From Podarcis liolepis (lineage: Eukaryota): a DNA stretch of 64,000 nt. The stretch lies in NCBI GenBank assembly GCA_965112155.1, contig OZ218100.1; one strand, given 5' to 3'. Both the position numbers and the translations under genes were made by a program. Below the pieces are notes generated by a model. That model ran no database searches. It worked only from the letters and a program-made list of their open reading frames with translations, and was not told the origin of the DNA. This document shows, piece by piece, positions 37,801-48,300 of the stretch. Within the stretch, counting starts at the first letter, position 1; every line of letters begins with the position of its first letter.

Positions 37801-39356
37801 CAGTCAGATCTCTTGTTTAACTACTGTCAAATGTGTCCCCTAGCTCTGTAAATAATTATGTACTTATTACACTTTAGAGTTGCCAATACTGCTTGTTTAG
37901 CTTCAGATTTTCCAGTAATAGGGTGGAACCCCATTGCAGAAACATAACGTATGTTGACCGCAAAAAAAAAAGTGTTTAGGAAACCATTTCTGCAATGATG
38001 ACATGTATGTTCTCTCCCATTTCAGCTAGTTCCTCGCACGTAAAAAAAGTGCACACTTCCAAGGCACCGTCGTCATCTCCTTCATCCACATCATCTCGCC
38101 CTAAAACCTCTAAAGAGCCGACGTCAAGCAAAACAGGCACAGGGACACCCAGAGACAAGAAGAAGCATGGAAAGCAGGTGGCGGTGCGAACATCTGCTGA
38201 TGGGGACATTTCTTCCACCTCAAACACAGCAGTGGGCAACTCAGAAGCAAAGGTGGAAAACTCTAAACCAGAAGAGCCTCTCTCTGTTATTTCTGAAGCT
38301 AGAGACACAACGCAGCCAAGCACAGCTACTGTTCCTCCCCCTCCTGCTGTTCCGCCACCACCCCCTCCTCCCTTCATCCCATCTCTGTATCCAGGCTCTC
38401 AGCCCCCTGGTTTCTCAGACACACAAGATGTGCCAGTTAGCACTGAAATAGCTCCGTCTGTCCCTGGCACAGATTCTAACGATCTTCACATGAAAACTGA
38501 AGCAGATAGTGAAAGCTCTTCAAGCAGTGCTGTCCTAGACAATAGCCTGGATACTGAGGGAGAAGACACAGAATGGTAAGACCACATGCTCTCAGGTAGC
38601 TCATGATAACTTGGAGCAACATTGCAGTAGTATTTAGGGAGATGGTGGAGTGATTTAGATAGGCTTTCCTATACCTAAAGTTTGAACTATGCTTTGAAAC
38701 TCGGAAAGGTTTTGCTAATTTTCTCTCTCTTTCTTTAATTATATTTTCATAACCTCAAGCAGAAGTGAAAGAGAGGGAGCCAGGATTTTATGCAATTCAT
38801 TTATTTAAAAAAATACACAAGAAACTTTCAAAATAAAAGCTTTAGCAAAATTGCCAAGCATATAAAATAACTTGGTTAGACTGCTTTGAGTTTCAAATAT
38901 ATATTTGAAAGTCTGCAAATAGGGCTCCAAAATTACAGCTCACCATTTATTTGGAGATATGCTATTCATATTCTTTGTTCATTCCTAAGAGTTGTTAAAA
39001 AAAAAATCCATGGTTCTGGTTGAGTGAATATATCATGAGGCTCAGAGTTCTGTTTTAGAATGACTTCAATGTTCCAACATGGTGTAGTATGGTAGACATG
39101 GCCCCATTTCTGAGGCTGACTGCATTCTTAGGACAATTTCAGAAGGAGCTGTCCTTGGTAATGCTTCTATCCAGTAGCAAGCTGTGCTTCTTGAAAACAG
39201 CTTTGCTTCACCTTGTTTACTGAAACCTGGTATTGGGATCTTGCATTTTGCCTGGTGCTCTGCTGTGCAACAATGAAAGAAATGAATATTCCTTTAGAAA
39301 AGGGCTAAGCTGTGCCATGTTCCTTTCTAATCTAAAGCTCTTTCTATTTATCTGTG

Positions 39357-39397
<41 letters not shown>

Positions 39398-42300
39398 CAG
39401 ATCTTGCATAAATAAAACTCTCATTATGTACTTAAAATCAATTCCGCAGCATAAGGCCAGGATGCCATTTAGAAACTAGAAACTAATCAGGTATTTCACC
39501 CAGAAAAATACTGTCAGAGCTGCTTGAAGATCCTAGCTCACAGAGGATCACGCTAGTCAGCGGTCATTAAGTAAAAGTCTTTATTGAATTACAGTTTCCA
39601 TTCTCACGCTGCTGCGCGCAACTCTACGCCTAGTGGCTAGGTCGGCGAAGCTCCGTCTGAGTCTCCGCCCTGTGTGCACCAACTTAATATCCTAGCCTTG
39701 CTCCACCTTTTCCTCCTGACTGTCCTCCTCTGGGTCCCTCTACCCCCCGGGGCTTCTTCCTTCCGGGATTCTTCTGACGCTGACCCAGACCCTCCTGCCT
39801 CCTTGCGCCGGGCTTTAGGACCTGGTTCCCTTTCGGGGCTGCTTACTGCGCCGCCTTCCTCTGCATTTGAACTTGGCGCGCGCGCCCAACCTTCCACTTT
39901 CCTCTCAACCGTTTCTTCACTCCCCGATGGAGGTGTGGCCACTCCCGACTCATGTCCTCCCTCCTGTGGAGGTGTGGCCACTCCTGACTCATGTCCTCCC
40001 TCCTGTGGTGAGCTGCCAGCGCTTCCCCCCTGGCTCCCTTCCTCTTCCCTGCTTCCTGGCGGTGACGCTGGTCCCGATTTCCAGCTGCTCCCCCCTGAGT
40101 CCTCTCTGGCTCTGTCTTCCTGGGGTGCCCCCCTAGACTCCCCCCTTGCCCTCGCCACTGGTGCTCCTTTCTGTGAATCCTCTGATTCACTGGAAAGACT
40201 AGGAGATCTCGGGTCGTCGTCATCACTCATCTTTTCTTCTGCCTCCTCCCCTTCACTCTCTGTTTCCTCCCTTGCCCGTGCTTCTGCTCCTAAACCCCTG
40301 ACATCCATCCCCCCCTCGAAGCCCCCCATTCCCCCCTCCCCTCCTTCCGGTGCTGGAGCTGGGGGCTGCTGTTGCAAAGGGACGAACGTCGGATATCGGT
40401 CGCTTCCCGTGTCAGGTCTCCATCTGAAGTCTCCCGGGTCTTCCTCCCTGCTCTCGTCGACGACAGTCACCTCCGCTTCCATCTCTGTGCCGCCGTGCTC
40501 GAAACCAGGGTCGTCCCCGAAAACGTCCATGTCCGTCTCTCCCTCACTCCCTCCTGTCGGTGTTGCTCGTCCTGGGCCTTCCAGCCATCGTCTGCGCCAC
40601 TGCTCCTCTGGTCTATCGTCCCACCAATACGAGGGTTCTGATGCAGATCCCGAGGGTGACCCCTCCGGGGAACGGACGTCTCGTGTCGGTTCCTCGTCCG
40701 AGTCGAACCCCCGGAACGTGCTGGCCGAAAGCGTGGGCGTGAAAAGCCAGTCGTCGAAAAAGTCTGCTGGCATAGGTCTATGTGGGAAGAGGGCATGAAA
40801 CTCGTCTTTGAGCAGAGGTTCGTCTAAGGCGTAGCCCGGCACCCAGCTGTTCGCACTGGCCGGGGTGCCCTCCTTGGCGAGAAAGTATTCTACCCCCTCT
40901 TCCCCCCATCTGGAGTCCAAAATCTCAGTGACTTCGTTGATGCGCTCCTTCTGTGCCACTCCCGCGTGCCCTGTTCTGTCTCTGGCCGGACTCGGCACCG
41001 TTCCGGGTTCCTGGAACCTGTGCGGTGCCTTATAGGGAGTGAGCACCGATCTGTGGAATACCGGATGCATTCTGGAACCCTCCGGAAGCGCCAGTCTGAA
41101 AGCTACCGGGTTGACCTGCTCTTCGACTTGGTAGGGCCCCAGTTGTTTATGCCCTAGTTTCTTCTTGGCCAACGACCTGGCCGGCACTGCGTGGGCTGCT
41201 AACCAAACCCAGTCTCCCACGTGGAGCTCTTCTCCAACCCTCCTGTGCTTGTCTGCTTGTACCTTGTATGCGTGCTTGGCCAGCTCCAGGTGGCGCCTCA
41301 GCTGATCGTGGACTTCCTGCAGCTCCGACGCGAACGCATCTGCTGTCTGCGGCTCCCCCTCCCCCATTCTTTCCAGTCCCGGGAAGGTTCTGGGGTGCCT
41401 CCCGTTGTTGGCGAAGAACGGCGTGACCCCCGTGGACACGTGCTTCGTGTTGTTGTAGGCGAACTCGGCAAGCGGCAGGTAATCCACCCACGTCGCAGGC
41501 TGTTGATTTGCATAACATCTCAGGTACTGCTGCATGATGGCATTGACCCGCTCTGCCTGCCCGTTGGTCTGCGGGTGTCTCGCCGACGCCAGGTTGATCT
41601 TGACGTTCAGGAAGCCCATCAGCTTCTGCCAGAAATTCGAGATGAACTGCCGCCCCCGGTCGGACAGAATAGACCGTGGCAGACCGTGAACCTTGAACAC
41701 GTGGTCTATGAACAGTTTGGCGGTTTGCTCCGCCGTGGCCACCTTAGCACACGGAATGAAATGCGCCATCTTGGAAAACAGGTCCACCACCACCAGCACT
41801 GCCGTCTTGCCCCTTGAGCTGGGCAGATCCGTGACAAAGTCCAGGGCCACCCTTTCCCAAGGTTCGACCGGAGTTTGCAGCGGTTCCAACAGTCCGGCCG
41901 GCGGTTTGTGCACTGGTTTGGCCCTCTGGCAGGTGTCACACCTCGCCACGTAGTCTGCGACCTCCCCTCTCATTCCAGGCCACCAGAAATCCCTGGCTAC
42001 TAATTCCACCGTCTTCTCCTTGCCAAAGTGCCCGGCCGTGGGCGCGTCGTGCAGCTGCTGCAGCACCTTGGCTCGAAGTTCGTCTCCCGGCACGTAGATG
42101 GCCCCTTTACGGATGAGCAATCCATCTCTTAGCTGGAAACCGTCGGCCGCTGCCTTGCCCCTTTGCACCTCTGCCATCTTTGCTTGTGCGAAGGAGTCCC
42201 CCTGCAACGCTCGTCGCACCGCCTCTAGGTCCACGGTCGCCGCGGCGCACGCCCACACTGTTGGTGCGAAGATGTGCATGGCGGCCGCTGGTGTTGCGTC

Positions 42301-45300
42301 CTCCAGATACTGTGGCTTACGGGAGAGAGCGTCTGCCATGATGTTGGTGTCCCCCGGGACATACTCTATTCGGAAGTCGAAGTTTGCAAAGAACTCAGCC
42401 CAACGTATCTGCCTCTGGTTCAGGAACTGTGCCGTGCGCCAGTGCTCTAGATTCTTGTGGTCCGTGCAAACCTGCACCGTGTGCTTGGCGCCGATCAGAA
42501 AGTGCCTCCACGCCTTGAACGCTGCGTGAATGGCCAGCAACTCCCTGTCCCAGATGGTGTAGTTCTGTTCGGACTTGCTGAGCTTCCTGGAGTAAAACGC
42601 TCCCGGTCGCCACACCCCCTGCGGGTCTTTCTGCAGCAGGACCGCCCCCACGGCTCTGTCCGAGGCGTCTGTCTCCACCCTCATCGGCTTGCTGGGGTTG
42701 ACATGAAGCAGCTGCTCTTCCGACGCGAAGAGACGCTTGAGTGCCTGAAAGGACTGCTCCGCCTGCTCTGTCCAAACGAACTTCTTTTTCTTGGAGCTAA
42801 GCGTGTCAGTGATGGCCGCTGTCTGCATAGCGAAGCCCTTGATAAACTTGCGATAGAAGTTCGCAAAGCCGACAAACCGTTGGACCTCCTTCCGGTTGCG
42901 CGGACTCTTCCAATCCAACACCGCTCGAACCTTGGCGCTGTCCATGGCGAGCCCCTTGTCAGACAGCTTGTAGCCCAGAAAATCCACCTCCGGCACGTCA
43001 AATTGGCACTTCTCCAGCTTGGCGTAGAGCCTATGTTGCTTTAGCCTGCTCAGCACTTCCTTGACGTGTCCGTCATGCTCCTGCCGCGACTCCGAAAAGA
43101 TCAGGATGTCATCTAAGAAACAGACGCACGTCTTGTAGAGAAGCCCTGCCAACACGTGATGCATAAACGCTTGAAAAACGTGGGAGCCATTTTGCAATCC
43201 AAAAGGCATAACTCTATATTCGTAGGTCCCCAGTGGCGTGAACATGGCTGTCTTCCACTCATCTCCTTCCCGCATGCGAATGAGGTTGTACGCCCCCCGC
43301 AGGTCCAGCTTGGTGAACACTCTGCCCTTCCGTACCTTTGCGAGGAGGTCGTCAATACGGGGCATGGGGAAGTCCGATGGCCTAGTCAGACTGTTCAAAA
43401 TCCTGTAATCCACTACCAGTCTTTTTTGGGGCGTGTTCCGCTTCTTAACAAAGAATACGGGACTGCCCCCCACTGCCCTGGACTCCCGGATGAAGCCGCG
43501 TTGCAAATTATGATCAATGAACGCCTTGAGTTCTTGCAGTTCGTCCTCTGACATGGAATACAGTTTCCCTTTAGGCAGCGCCGCCCCCGGCAGCAGGTCA
43601 ATTTTGCAGTCATATGGTCTGTGAGGGGGTAGCCTGTCTGCCTCCTTCTCGCAGAAAACTTCCAAAAATTCAGCGTACTTGTGGGGAATCGCTTGCAGCG
43701 TGCCTAGCAGCAGCTGTGACTCCTCTTCTTCTCCTTCCTGCCTGGGCACGATGCAGTGTTCAGCACAAAAGGAAGAGCCGAAGGTCAGCTGCCTCTGGTA
43801 CCAAGCCATCGCTGGGCTGTGCTTGTCCAGCCAACTCATGCCCAATACAATGGGCGTGTCAGATAGTTGAGTGACGTTGAAGCTGATGATTTCTCTGTGA
43901 TTCCCAAGTCGCATCACCATTGGTGGCGTCTGCTTCACCACTTGCCCCCCGAGCAGCTCCCTGCCATCCACCGTGACAACCTGCAGGGGCAGTGTGGCCG
44001 GCAGCAACTGCACAGCGTGCCTGTCGACAAAGTCCTGCCCTATAAAGTCCGCATTGCTGCCTGAGTCAATGGTGATTGGTACGTCCATGGTGATTCCATT
44101 GGGCAGCTGGAGAGACGCTGTGAGCCTCACTACTGGTTTGGGCGGGAGGGGGTTCACGGGCTGTAAAATCTCTGGGGACTGCGTCACTAACACGTCTGGC
44201 TGGGCCCCAGTGCCTCTTCCTCCAGCCAGACAGCCTCGTTTCCCTGCTGTGGTCCTCCTTGCTGTGTTGCTGCAGTCACCATTGCTGAGGCTGCAGTGAG
44301 CTTGTGGGGCCTCTGGGGACACTCTTTCGCCATATGCCCTGGCTCCTCACAGACGTAACACTTCCTGTTCCCTCTAGGAGGCTTCGCTTTCACTGCTGCC
44401 GGTGCTAGGGCTCTGGCTGCTGACTGAGCCCTTGCACCTCCCACCTCCATAGGTTCGGTTCCTCCTCCTGGCGGAGGCGTGGATTGCGCCCGCGCTGCTT
44501 CCCTGGGAAAGAAGGAGGGGCCCCCGGCTGGTTCGCGCCCTCCACGCCCTTCGTCCCTGTTCCACGGACGTCCTTCCAGCCTCACCCCCACTGCCAGTGC
44601 CCTCTGCACGACCTCCTGGGTGGTTCGGGGTCTCTCCCCCCTCGCTATCTCATCTTTAATCGAGTTGTGCAGCCCCTCCCAAAAGAGGTCTCTTACAGGA
44701 GCCGAATCTCTGCCCCATTCCAGGGCACTGACCAAGGCGAAAAAGCGGGCATGATACTGCCTGACGCTGGCCCTCCCTTGTCTCAGCCCATGCACCTCCT
44801 TCCGTGCAAGATCCACGTCAATACTTGATAAAAAACACCCATCCATTGCTTTAATAAAGGCATCTGCATTCTGTAGCACCGGATCCTTATCTCTCCATAA
44901 ATTGCGTAGCCATGCTCTCGCATCCCCATGCAGATGGGACATGATGAACCCCACTCTCTCTTGTTCATCTCTAAAGTCTTTATGCAGCAGTTGCAGTGCG
45001 CACAGTACGTCGGCTCTAAAGTTGGGATACTGTTGCAGGTTCCCATCGAAGTGAGAGACCAGCCCGCCTGTCCGTCTCGCCAACCCAATTCCCTCCTGCC
45101 GGGGTGTCTGCTTTGTCAGCACGTCTAACCTGACCTGGAGATCCCTGCAGGCTGCGGCTGCCTCCTCCTCTCTCTTCCTGGATGCGAGAGCCTCGGCGTT
45201 CAGTTGTGCCACCGCGTTTCTGAGTTCCTCTATCTGCTGCTCAGCCGTCATGTCGTCTGCCGTTCGTGAGCTCGCTAGTAGGCACCTGTGTCTCTCCCCT

Positions 45301-48300
45301 CCTCGAGGCTGTAGATGCCCACAAGTGGAGACGGAGCTTACTGTCAGAGCTGCTTGAAGATCCTAGCTCACAGAGGATCACGCTAGTCAGCGGTCATTAA
45401 GTAAAAGTCTTTATTGAATTACAGTTTCCATTCTCACGCTGCTGCGCGCAACTCTACGCCTAGTGGCTAGGTCGGCGAAGCTCCGTCTGAGTCTCCGCCC
45501 TGTGTGCACCAACTTAATATCCTAGCCTTGCTCCACCTTTTCCTCCTGACTGTCCTCCTCTGGGTCCCTCTACCCCCCGGGGCTTCTTCCTTCCGGGATT
45601 CTTCTGACGCTGACCCAGACCCTCCTGCCTCCTTGCGCCGGGCTTTAGGACCTGGTTCCCTTTCGGGGCTGCTTACTGCGCCGCCTTCCTCTGCATTTGA
45701 ACTTGGCGCGCGCGCCCAACCTTCCACTTTCCTCTCAACCGTTTCTTCACTCCCCGATGGAGGTGTGGCCACTCCCGACTCATGTCCTCCCTCCTGTGGA
45801 GGTGTGGCCACTCCTGACTCATGTCCTCCCTCCTGTGGTGAGCTGCCAGCGCTTCCCCCCTGGCTCCCTTCCTCTTCCCTGCTTCCTGGCGGTGACGCTG
45901 GTCCCGATTTCCAGCTGCTCCCCCCTGAGTCCTCTCTGGCTCTGTCTTCCTGGGGTGCCCCCCTAGACTCCCCCCTTGCCCTCGCCACTGGTGCTCCTTT
46001 CTGTGAATCCTCTGATTCACTGGAAAGACTAGGAGATCTCGGGTCGTCGTCATCACTCATCTTTTCTTCTGCCTCCTCCCCTTCACTCTCTGTTTCCTCC
46101 CTTGCCCGTGCTTCTGCTCCTAAACCCCTGACAAATACTTTCCCCTGGAGTGATGATAGAATCATAGAATTGCAGAATTGGAAGGAGACCCGGGGGTTAT
46201 CTAGTCCAGCCTCGTGCAGTGCAAGAATCTCAGCTAAAGCATCCATGCTAGATGGCCACCCAAAGTCTGCTTAAAAACTTCCAATGAAAGAAAGTCCACC
46301 AAAACATGGAGCTCACAAGCTCTCTCTTTTCCTTCAGTTTTCTCACTGACTGCCAGGTTTGCAGCAAACCATAGTTTGCTATTGTATCCAAACCAGACAA
46401 ACTGGGAACACACTACAGTTTGCCTTTAAACCAGAATTGGAAGCCACATTCAAACCAGGGGTGGCTTGCATGGCCCAAAGGATGGAGAAACCATTATTTG
46501 GCATTACATTATTTTGCCCACGATCTGCATATTTTAAAATTTGTCTGCATAGTTTGTCTGAGCTACAAATTTGCAATCCGTTTATAAATAGCTGACCTTT
46601 TAAGGAATCCAAAGCTCTGTACAAGTGGAGTTCTAAATATATTAATCAAGCTACCTATACTTCCCATAATGTCTGCATAGGTAGGTACATGTTGGATATG
46701 TGCTATGTTACACTTATCCTCAACTGTTCTAGTATCCTCCTTTCTCCATTTGTAACACCAAGCAGAAGTCTTGGTTCATGATAGATTCTAGCCTAATCTA
46801 CATAGCGTTGTTTTATTATCTCCCCCTTCTGTGTGCTTTGTAAACACAACTCATTTTTAGGTTTAAGTTCTGGTTACTGTTTTCTAAAAGTCTGCTGGCT
46901 TGACATAGTGTCCTGGCTTGTGCCATGGTCTGTATAGATTAATTGTGATTTATTTGTATGTTTGAACCCACATCAGCCAATGGTTTGTGGCCAGCAAAGC
47001 AGAATGTGAAACCATGGCTTGAAATTGGTTTAATGAATCTCTGCTTGCATCAACCATGGTTTTTTGTTATGTCCAAACCCAATGTCCTGTTTAATTCTTA
47101 CATAGTTCCAGAAATGCAAAGCAAAAGCAGCTAGAAAATTAAACTAACATGATGCAAAACAAGGCACAGTTACTCTGCTGGTCAACATACCACAGTTAAA
47201 ACAAGCTGTGGCTTAGCGTTATGTCTGAACACAGCCTTTTCCTAAGGTTTGCACGCATGTAAACAGCCTCACTGTCATGTTTCTGTAGTGTTTATGTCAA
47301 GTACTACAGGTTTTTTCCCCCTCCCCTGTGGATCTACAGTTCTGTTACCAAAGAAGATCAGGAAAAAGAGAGCCCTGACCAACCAAGTCCTGCCCCAACA
47401 GATGAACCTTCTGAAGCCCTAAACACTCCAGAAAGTGAGAGCTACAAAGAGAATCACACCAGTGACTCTGATTCAGATGGGCCAATACTCTACACAGATG
47501 ATGATGATGAAGATGATGATGATGGTAGTGAAAGTAAGCCATTAAGCCATGTTTACAAGGGGGAGGGAAACATACTTGTTGAGCAGAGAATTATACCGCC
47601 TTGTCAGAAGAGTCAAGTTCCACTTTATTTGGGATCCTCCATCAAGTCAGACCGTTACCCAGGCAAACGTCTACGTAGTTAAGGAATACCACCTTGCTTA
47701 CTTCAGTTGTTGGAACTGCAGAGGTGATGGCACAGTACCAGTTGCAGCAGGATGTATGTGCAGGCGCATAAACCTTATAGTGTAGCACGCTATTATACCG
47801 TTATCGCAGGTTGAGGGACTGTGCTGATAGAGAGTGACTTGCAGCAGTCTTGCATTGTAGCATACTGCTAATGTTGAAGGTCAGAGATGTGGGGTGGGGA
47901 AGCTGGTTTATATTCCCAGACAAAAGTCCTCCAGATCTCTCTCAGGTTTCAGCAAAGATGTGTCTGCTGAAATTGCTCCTTTGGACCTCTTCCCAGGTCA
48001 AATCAGGTACTCCATTTCACACAGAAGCCTCATGCTCTGTGAACTTTCATTTAATCTAATTGCAATTTTACACATTTTTTAAAAATATTTTTTTTAATGA
48101 GCATGAAGAAAGACATGCCTGTGTGAGGCAGCTGCAGCCATCACCAACTTCATTTCCCCCAAATGTATCTGGGGGATACATATTCCCCCAAATATGTGGG
48201 CCAGAGGCATTTGGGGAAAGTTAACATTGTGGTGGCTGCAACTGCTTGGCCTAACACTTCTCCAGTACCAGGGTGCTTGGCAGCCCTTGCTTTTGCTGCC

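Follow-up and report, generated by a model that had tools for sequence, protein, structure and literature searches.

A 64,000-nucleotide stretch of the genome of the lizard Podarcis liolepis (assembly GCA_965112155.1, contig OZ218100.1; the whole stretch is hereafter called the window) carries on its minus strand a complete Ty3/gypsy chromovirus-like retrotransposon, with two long terminal repeats (LTRs) and a 5-bp target duplication. The pol open reading frame (ORF) of this element does not end after the chromodomain-like segment of integrase, and continues across the polypurine tract (PPT), through the entire U3 region of the 3' LTR and into the start of R. It appears quite likely that this is a young, self-priming element in which pol has been extended over these regions, that the resulting integrase tail is under selection as a protein, and that it arose by overprinting rather than from a captured host gene.

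The pol ORF (39637..44322, 1561 codons plus TAG; coordinates are on the minus strand unless indicated) runs for 378 codons (nt 40773..39640) past the ...FHALFPHRP sequence at aa 1183, in agreement with the roughly 380 codons given in the initial annotation of this DNA. The 3' LTR (39512..40303; 792 bp, TGTCAG...CTGACA) carries codons 1340-1561. Codon 1340 straddles the LTR edge, the first codon wholly inside the LTR begins at LTR nt 2 (GTC, V1341), and 221 codons lie inside the LTR, as first proposed. Within the LTR the frame covers U3 in full, the TATA-like box and R as far as its 21st nt. Thus the PPT (GAGGGGGGGATGGA, 40317-40304), which adjoins the LTR edge and is accompanied by G-runs at 40322-40345, is also coding; the TATA-like box (ATATTAAG, 39690-39683) lies inside the codons R-I-L-S, and the 11-nt self-primer (AGACGGAGCTT, 39658-39648), together with the inferred start of R, lies inside the codons S-D-G-A-S. 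All three had been described earlier at these places and in these codons. The stop codon TAG (39637..39639) is located 19-21 nt into R, past the predicted equivalent of the transcription start at 39658, and AATAAA (39585-39580) follows it at 52 nt, where a distance of about 50 nt had been reported. The description of the tail as rich in D, E, S, G and P with a basic end is likewise supported by its composition, with 80 D+E against 44 K+R, an abundance of S, G and P, and a basic C-terminal patch.

No stop interrupts the 378 tail codons in the pol frame, while the other two sense frames contain 5 and 16 and the three antisense frames 14, 0 and 8. With T making up only 12% of the sense strand in the tail, stops are scarce whatever the frame, and the openness expected by chance was calculated with first-order Markov simulations of matched dinucleotide composition. 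The probability of finding no stop was 0.0006 when the whole tail was considered and 0.012 when only the 221 LTR codons were, and the run-on is not explained by chance. From the window copy alone, the openness of the LTR part is only moderately unexpected. Codon periodicity is visible in the LTR part, where G has a frequency of 0.49 at position 1 as opposed to 0.35 at each of the other two, and T falls to 0.06 at position 2. These figures bear on the possibility of a neutral run-on, in which the T-poor strand and the youth of the insertion would keep the frame open and the tail would be translated, functionless and unselected. Stops are indeed scarce in such a composition, with only 5 in one of the other sense frames and one antisense frame open, and the identical LTRs indicate that the window copy has had no time to decay. 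However, the related copies described below argue against this possibility, which we consider very unlikely.

The comparative evidence consists solely of protein sequences, and selection was inferred from protein alignments. A tail-region search with the whole protein returned five 90% clusters, all named 'Gypsy retrotransposon integrase-like protein 1' of Podarcis muralis, with members from P. muralis and P. lilfordi. In protein form, 20 further tails were obtained, and both species are among their sources. A profile-free scan of 1.84 billion representatives and a search with the tail alone added the ORFs P0047, P0048 and P0052 and the P. lilfordi proteins P0049-51; the contribution of the tail search was limited to two Logan fragments. 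Most of the related tails are database gene models, and plain ORFs on contigs are represented only by the window, P0047, P0048 and P0052. Outside this family no homologue of the tail was found among the 1.84 billion representatives, and capture of a host gene as the source of the tail was rejected for this reason. The tail had no match in Pfam and no usable match in the ESM Atlas, and megablast gave no match to phage records, a set that is not relevant to the tail.

Four diverged subfamilies, with tail identity down to about 50%, keep the frame open as far as the same stop. Complete tails that share this frame and stop are present in ten proteins of cluster 1 (P0001, P0009, P0011-15 and P0017-19), in P0033 of cluster 2, in P0039 and P0035 of cluster 4, and in P0047, a 415-aa ORF that fills a contig of 1384 nt. 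The ORFs P0048, P0049 and P0052, which cover the LTR only, use the same frame and stop as well. One shared tail ending reads ...GTDSEGTSAV, and P0003 is in frame throughout with a different ending. The differences that separate the subfamilies are in-frame indels of 18, 13, 10, about 21, 6, 3, 2 and 1 residues. Moreover, P0039 has GASRG where the others have GGFEG, which corresponds to three codons read in the +2 frame between two G-runs of the PPT region, that is, a compensated frameshift. Changes that break the frame occur only in single copies or small groups, leading, within the same DNA, to frame 2 in P0016 and P0045 and to frame 1 in P0005, P0004/43 and P0051/50. The occurrence of frameshifts in individual copies indicates that the mutation process is not biased to multiples of three; such changes have simply not persisted in the lineages from which new subfamilies arose. 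In P0004/37/43 a common uncompensated shift at the G-runs and PPT (40304-40345) leads to a stop about 10 codons into the LTR, and these copies may represent a small lineage whose tail is truncated.

Neutral drift was simulated from the window tail by random substitutions with matched composition and a transition bias of 2, without indels, in 400 runs. At 53% amino acid identity the simulated tails had accumulated 8.5 in-frame stops and none of the 400 runs was free of stops; in the LTR part there were 5.0 stops at 54% identity (P = 0.0025), and the P value at 68% was 0.0175. A neutral run-on would thus have given 5-8.5 stops, whereas the real subfamilies keep the same frame and stop at 45-68% identity in the LTR-coded part, all of their shared indels are in frame, and the one frameshift is compensated. 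Taken together, the retention of the frame, the in-frame indels and the outcome of the drift simulation form the pattern that would be expected if the elements needed an open frame to propagate. The proposal that LTR DNA also acts as coding sequence for an extension of integrase is supported by these data, as the frame, the stop and the basic C-terminus are all kept in diverged subfamilies.

Some points weigh against selection of the tail as a protein and must be taken into account. The expectation that relatives would keep the frame open, with indels in multiples of three, holds at the protein level between subfamilies, but not for individual copies, in which frameshifts do occur, and of the copies that extend into the tail about half are cut short within it. 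The annotated proteins are a biased sample of copies, and the database gene models that make up most of the related tails could hide small frame corrections. For the LTR part alone, the openness has a chance probability of only 0.012, a value that favours a neutral run-on. In addition, the blocks conserved in the LTR part could owe their retention to a role in the promoter and not in the protein.

The tail is not conserved evenly along its length. Tail A (40573..40773, aa 1184-1250) contains conserved aromatic-acidic motifs, an acidic run and the sequence SYWWD..PEE.WRR.W, and is nearly invariant, with 66-96% identity to the other subfamilies. Tail B (40304..40572, aa 1251-1339) is variable, acidic and rich in G and P; it ends where the G-runs, the PPT and the LTR edge are read as protein, and is the fastest-evolving part of the tail. 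Tail C (39640..40303, aa 1340-1561) is coded by U3 together with the first 21 nt of R, is rich in S, E, G and P, and has a net charge of -18 up to aa 1520. It includes a near-invariant 14-residue block (40159-40200). Between P0039 and the window, identity is 83% in reverse transcriptase (RT), 83% in integrase (IN), 41% in the linker between the SH3 domain and the chromodomain-like segment and 96% in that segment itself, followed by 70% in tail A, 44% in tail B and 54% in tail C; for P0033 the three tail values are 72%, 54% and 68%. In P0039, therefore, the LTR-coded tail C is more conserved than either tail B or the linker, which fits a double constraint, as promoter and as protein, although it does not separate the two.

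This uneven conservation is also relevant to the possibility that the frame has been kept for a reason at the level of RNA or translation, for instance to place the pol stop near the poly(A) site, so that only the position of the stop and the length of the frame would matter. The conserved position of the stop in R is in accordance with this, as is the fact that most of tails B and C evolve near the rate of the unconstrained linker (44-54% against 41% identity). On the other hand, such a reason would not account for the near-invariance of tail A, or for the basic C-terminus and the SSESEDS block being kept while their neighbours change. Furthermore, in frameshift-dependent Gag-Pol expression most ribosomes stop at the far-upstream gag stop anyway. 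We give this explanation very little credence.

A third possibility is that the LTR frame encodes an accessory protein of its own, comparable to HIV nef or MMTV sag, or that the antisense strand carries a real gene. In favour of an accessory protein, LTR-only ORFs exist (P0048, P0049 and P0052), and gene callers start such proteins at an internal Met in ...EEKMSDDDD (P0048). Nevertheless, the frame runs on from pol without a break in the window, as it does in at least 14 further copies. As to the antisense strand, an ORF of 374 codons with a hydrophobic N-terminus (39674..40798, plus strand) is open across the tail. When the sense codons were shuffled, the frame of this ORF was expected to contain 2.3 stops, with a probability of 0.08 for none, against 14 and 7.8 for the other two antisense frames. 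The antisense ORF was thus rejected as a real gene, because its openness is predicted by the codon content of the sense strand, and no protein matching it was present among the family matches. In either form this possibility appears the most improbable of those considered. The LTR frame is also open in the 5' LTR, where a 259-aa ORF (45467-46246) begins in flanking DNA.

The integrase tail that we believe to be selected as a protein would consist of four parts: a conserved aromatic-acidic segment with a helix, an S/T linker, FxGF and an acidic run; a fast-evolving acidic spacer that is probably disordered; a phospho-acidic block; and a conserved basic C-terminus. In the first of these, the helix ADFFDDWLF, a linker of 8 S/T-rich residues, FxGF and then DSDEE are invariant (aa 1186-1211, within 40690-40773). 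TND-interacting motifs read by LEDGF/HRP2 are composed of a short helix, an acidic or phospho linker of 8-16 residues and FxGF (PMC9987994). The helix-linker-FxGF layout of tail A is similar, a resemblance by motif alone, although its linker is S/T-rich where the linker of those motifs is acidic. No report of FxGF motifs in retrotransposon integrases was found in our literature searches.

At the other end of the tail, the basic patch of 13 residues (39691..39729) lies directly upstream of the TATA-like box. It stays basic in other subfamilies despite changes in its sequence (RQKEKRRRWSKAR, RKRKDRKRWTSRS). It could serve as a nuclear localization signal or as a nucleosome anchor, but it could equally be a chromatin-binding motif, or owe its constraint to a promoter role of the DNA just upstream of the TATA-like box. 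When aa 1100-1561 were modelled with AlphaFold from a 14-row alignment, the mean pLDDT was 43.6, and the chromodomain-like part did not reach a confident fold either. This low-confidence model contains only short helices, in an 18-residue stretch and near the C-terminus; a disordered tail would fit both the model and the composition, although a model of such poor quality is little guide to disorder. Tail C also contains two 39-bp tandem units of 13 codons each, in frame (39928..40005, in U3), which are found in the 5' LTR at 45758-45835. The second unit is private to the window copy, with one unit in all 20 other tails, and its presence in both LTRs indicates that the duplication predates or accompanied the insertion.

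The segment that precedes the tail matches known chromodomains only weakly. The Pfam Chromo match at aa 1130-1180 (40783..40935) has E=0.0059 and 16.9 bits, under the curated cut-off of 25.1, and the chromodomains of CBX5/HP1 match with E=0.007. In the HMMER alignment to HP1/CBX5 the positions of the aromatic cage are occupied by N, K and T, all three aromatics being replaced. It is therefore doubtful that this segment reads methyl-lysine, and the loss of the cage suggests that targeting may no longer depend on such reading.

We propose that the tail originated by loss of the old stop followed by overprinting of U3. An overprinting origin is suggested because no homologue of the tail exists elsewhere in the sequences searched and because distant chromoviruses end 5-54 residues past the chromodomain. 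As U3 lies at the 3' end of the full-length RNA, each translation of Gag-Pol that reaches integrase would produce the C-terminal tail of 378 residues. The frame is kept open in the family, and the same DNA would code for the tail while acting as PPT, LTR end and promoter. Judged from its sequence, the tail may be an integrase appendage for nuclear entry, for tethering to host chromatin, or for both, and might replace the targeting role of a chromodomain-like fold that lacks a methyl-lysine cage. A more specific proposal, which we regard as unlikely but worth stating, is that the tail is a targeting module formed de novo from an overprinted promoter, in which the helix-linker-FxGF segment docks on TND proteins of the LEDGF/HRP2 type and the basic end docks on nucleosomes or importins. 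If so, a vertebrate retrotransposon would have arrived independently at the strategy by which lentiviruses tether integration to transcribed chromatin, and U3 would be evolving under simultaneous promoter and protein constraint.

The remaining features of the element are those of a complete copy. The 5' LTR (45342..46133) has 792 bp and is 100% identical to the 3' LTR, and the target duplication GTATT is located at 39507-39511 and 46134-46138, flanking both LTRs. As the LTRs are identical at every base, the insertion is very young. No second copy of the element or of its LTR was found within the 64-kb window. The gag gene (45251..44187) encodes 354 aa with Retrotrans_gag, Ty3_capsid and a zf-CCHC knuckle. 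The order of domains in pol is RVP_2 (protease, PR), RVT_1, RT_RNaseH, Integrase_H2C2, rve, SH3_Tf2-1, the chromodomain-like fold and the 378-codon tail. The order PR-RT-RNase H-IN, the capsid/CCHC gag, and the TG...CA LTRs with a short target duplication place the element in the Ty3/gypsy group (Metaviridae). The gag and pol frames are different and overlap by about 135 nt (44187-44322), which fits frameshift-dependent expression of Gag-Pol. The self-primer AGACGGAGCTT is the exact complement of the primer binding site (PBS) at 45339-45329, 2 nt past the 5' LTR. On the strand opposite to the element, some 930 bp past the 3' LTR, there is a 194-aa S/P/T-rich ORF (37995-38579, plus strand) that resembles a host exon; if it is one, the element lies in or beside a gene, in antisense orientation.

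The U3 regions of LTRs are usually treated as non-coding and fast-evolving. Here protein is also encoded by the whole of U3, and likewise by the PPT, the LTR end, the TATA-like box and the self-primer, in a frame kept across subfamilies. The element would thus be a clear natural example of dual coding, in which protein sequence has arisen out of regulatory DNA. The annotation of transposable elements is affected, as ORFs that cover only the LTR appear in Podarcis gene sets under the names 'uncharacterized' or 'hypothetical' protein (P0048, P0049 and P0052). Dating by LTR divergence would be affected as well, because the LTR sites would not be neutral. Moreover, the question is raised of how vertebrate chromoviruses choose integration sites after the loss of the chromodomain cage.

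Coding sequence in U3 is familiar from HIV nef and MMTV sag, which are separate genes that overlap U3 and are translated from their own mRNAs. In those viruses, as in the lizard element, U3 DNA is both promoter and coding sequence. However, nef and sag are ORFs of their own, whereas the LTR frame of the lizard element is a continuation of pol. Tails at the C-terminus of integrase that serve import or targeting are also known, such as the bipartite nuclear localization signal and the AC40-binding region of Ty1 IN, the targeting domain of Ty5 IN and the MLV IN tail that binds BET proteins. Like them, the lizard tail would be a disordered C-terminal appendage with short conserved motifs, as far as its sequence indicates, but they are not coded by the LTR.

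The element is of the type of the Tf1/sushi group, which includes Tf1 of S. pombe and the vertebrate sushi-ichi and is self-priming (PMC6317226). The likeness comprises the order PR-RT-RH-IN (RH being RNase H), an SH3 domain of the Tf2 type, a chromodomain-like C-terminus and a PBS that is the complement of the 5' end of the element itself. The PBS would accordingly pair with the 5' end of its own transcript and not with a tRNA, the transcription start being inferred. The more distant chromoviruses that were recovered end 5-54 residues after the chromodomain and none has the lizard tail. The earlier statement that a typical chromovirus Pol ends at or near the PPT is incomplete and does not hold in general, since plant chromoviruses of the CRM clade enter the LTR (PMC3605345, PMC3059260).

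In that clade (CRM group A, Beetle, and several Bingo elements of Beta vulgaris) the gag-pol ORF enters the 3' LTR and codes there for the CR motif (PMC3605345, PMC3059260). Common to the CRM clade and the lizard element is a gag-pol ORF that passes the PPT and continues within the 3' LTR, the C-terminal part of integrase being coded by the LTR. However, in CRM elements the CR motif, a chromodomain derivative, lies downstream of the PPT, whereas in the lizard element the chromodomain-like fold lies upstream of it and the tail is unrelated and much longer, with 378 aa, taking in all of U3 and ending in R. The hosts and priming also differ, a vertebrate and self-priming as opposed to plants and priming by tRNA-Met. 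No sequence similarity to CRM was found. With 221 LTR codons and no CR motif in that position, the lizard element is CRM-like in principle and not a member of the clade. No description of a vertebrate chromovirus whose pol runs through U3 was found in our literature searches. Thus, the principle of pol entering the 3' LTR was already known, and what is new is its extent, through all of U3 and into R, and the group of hosts in which it occurs.

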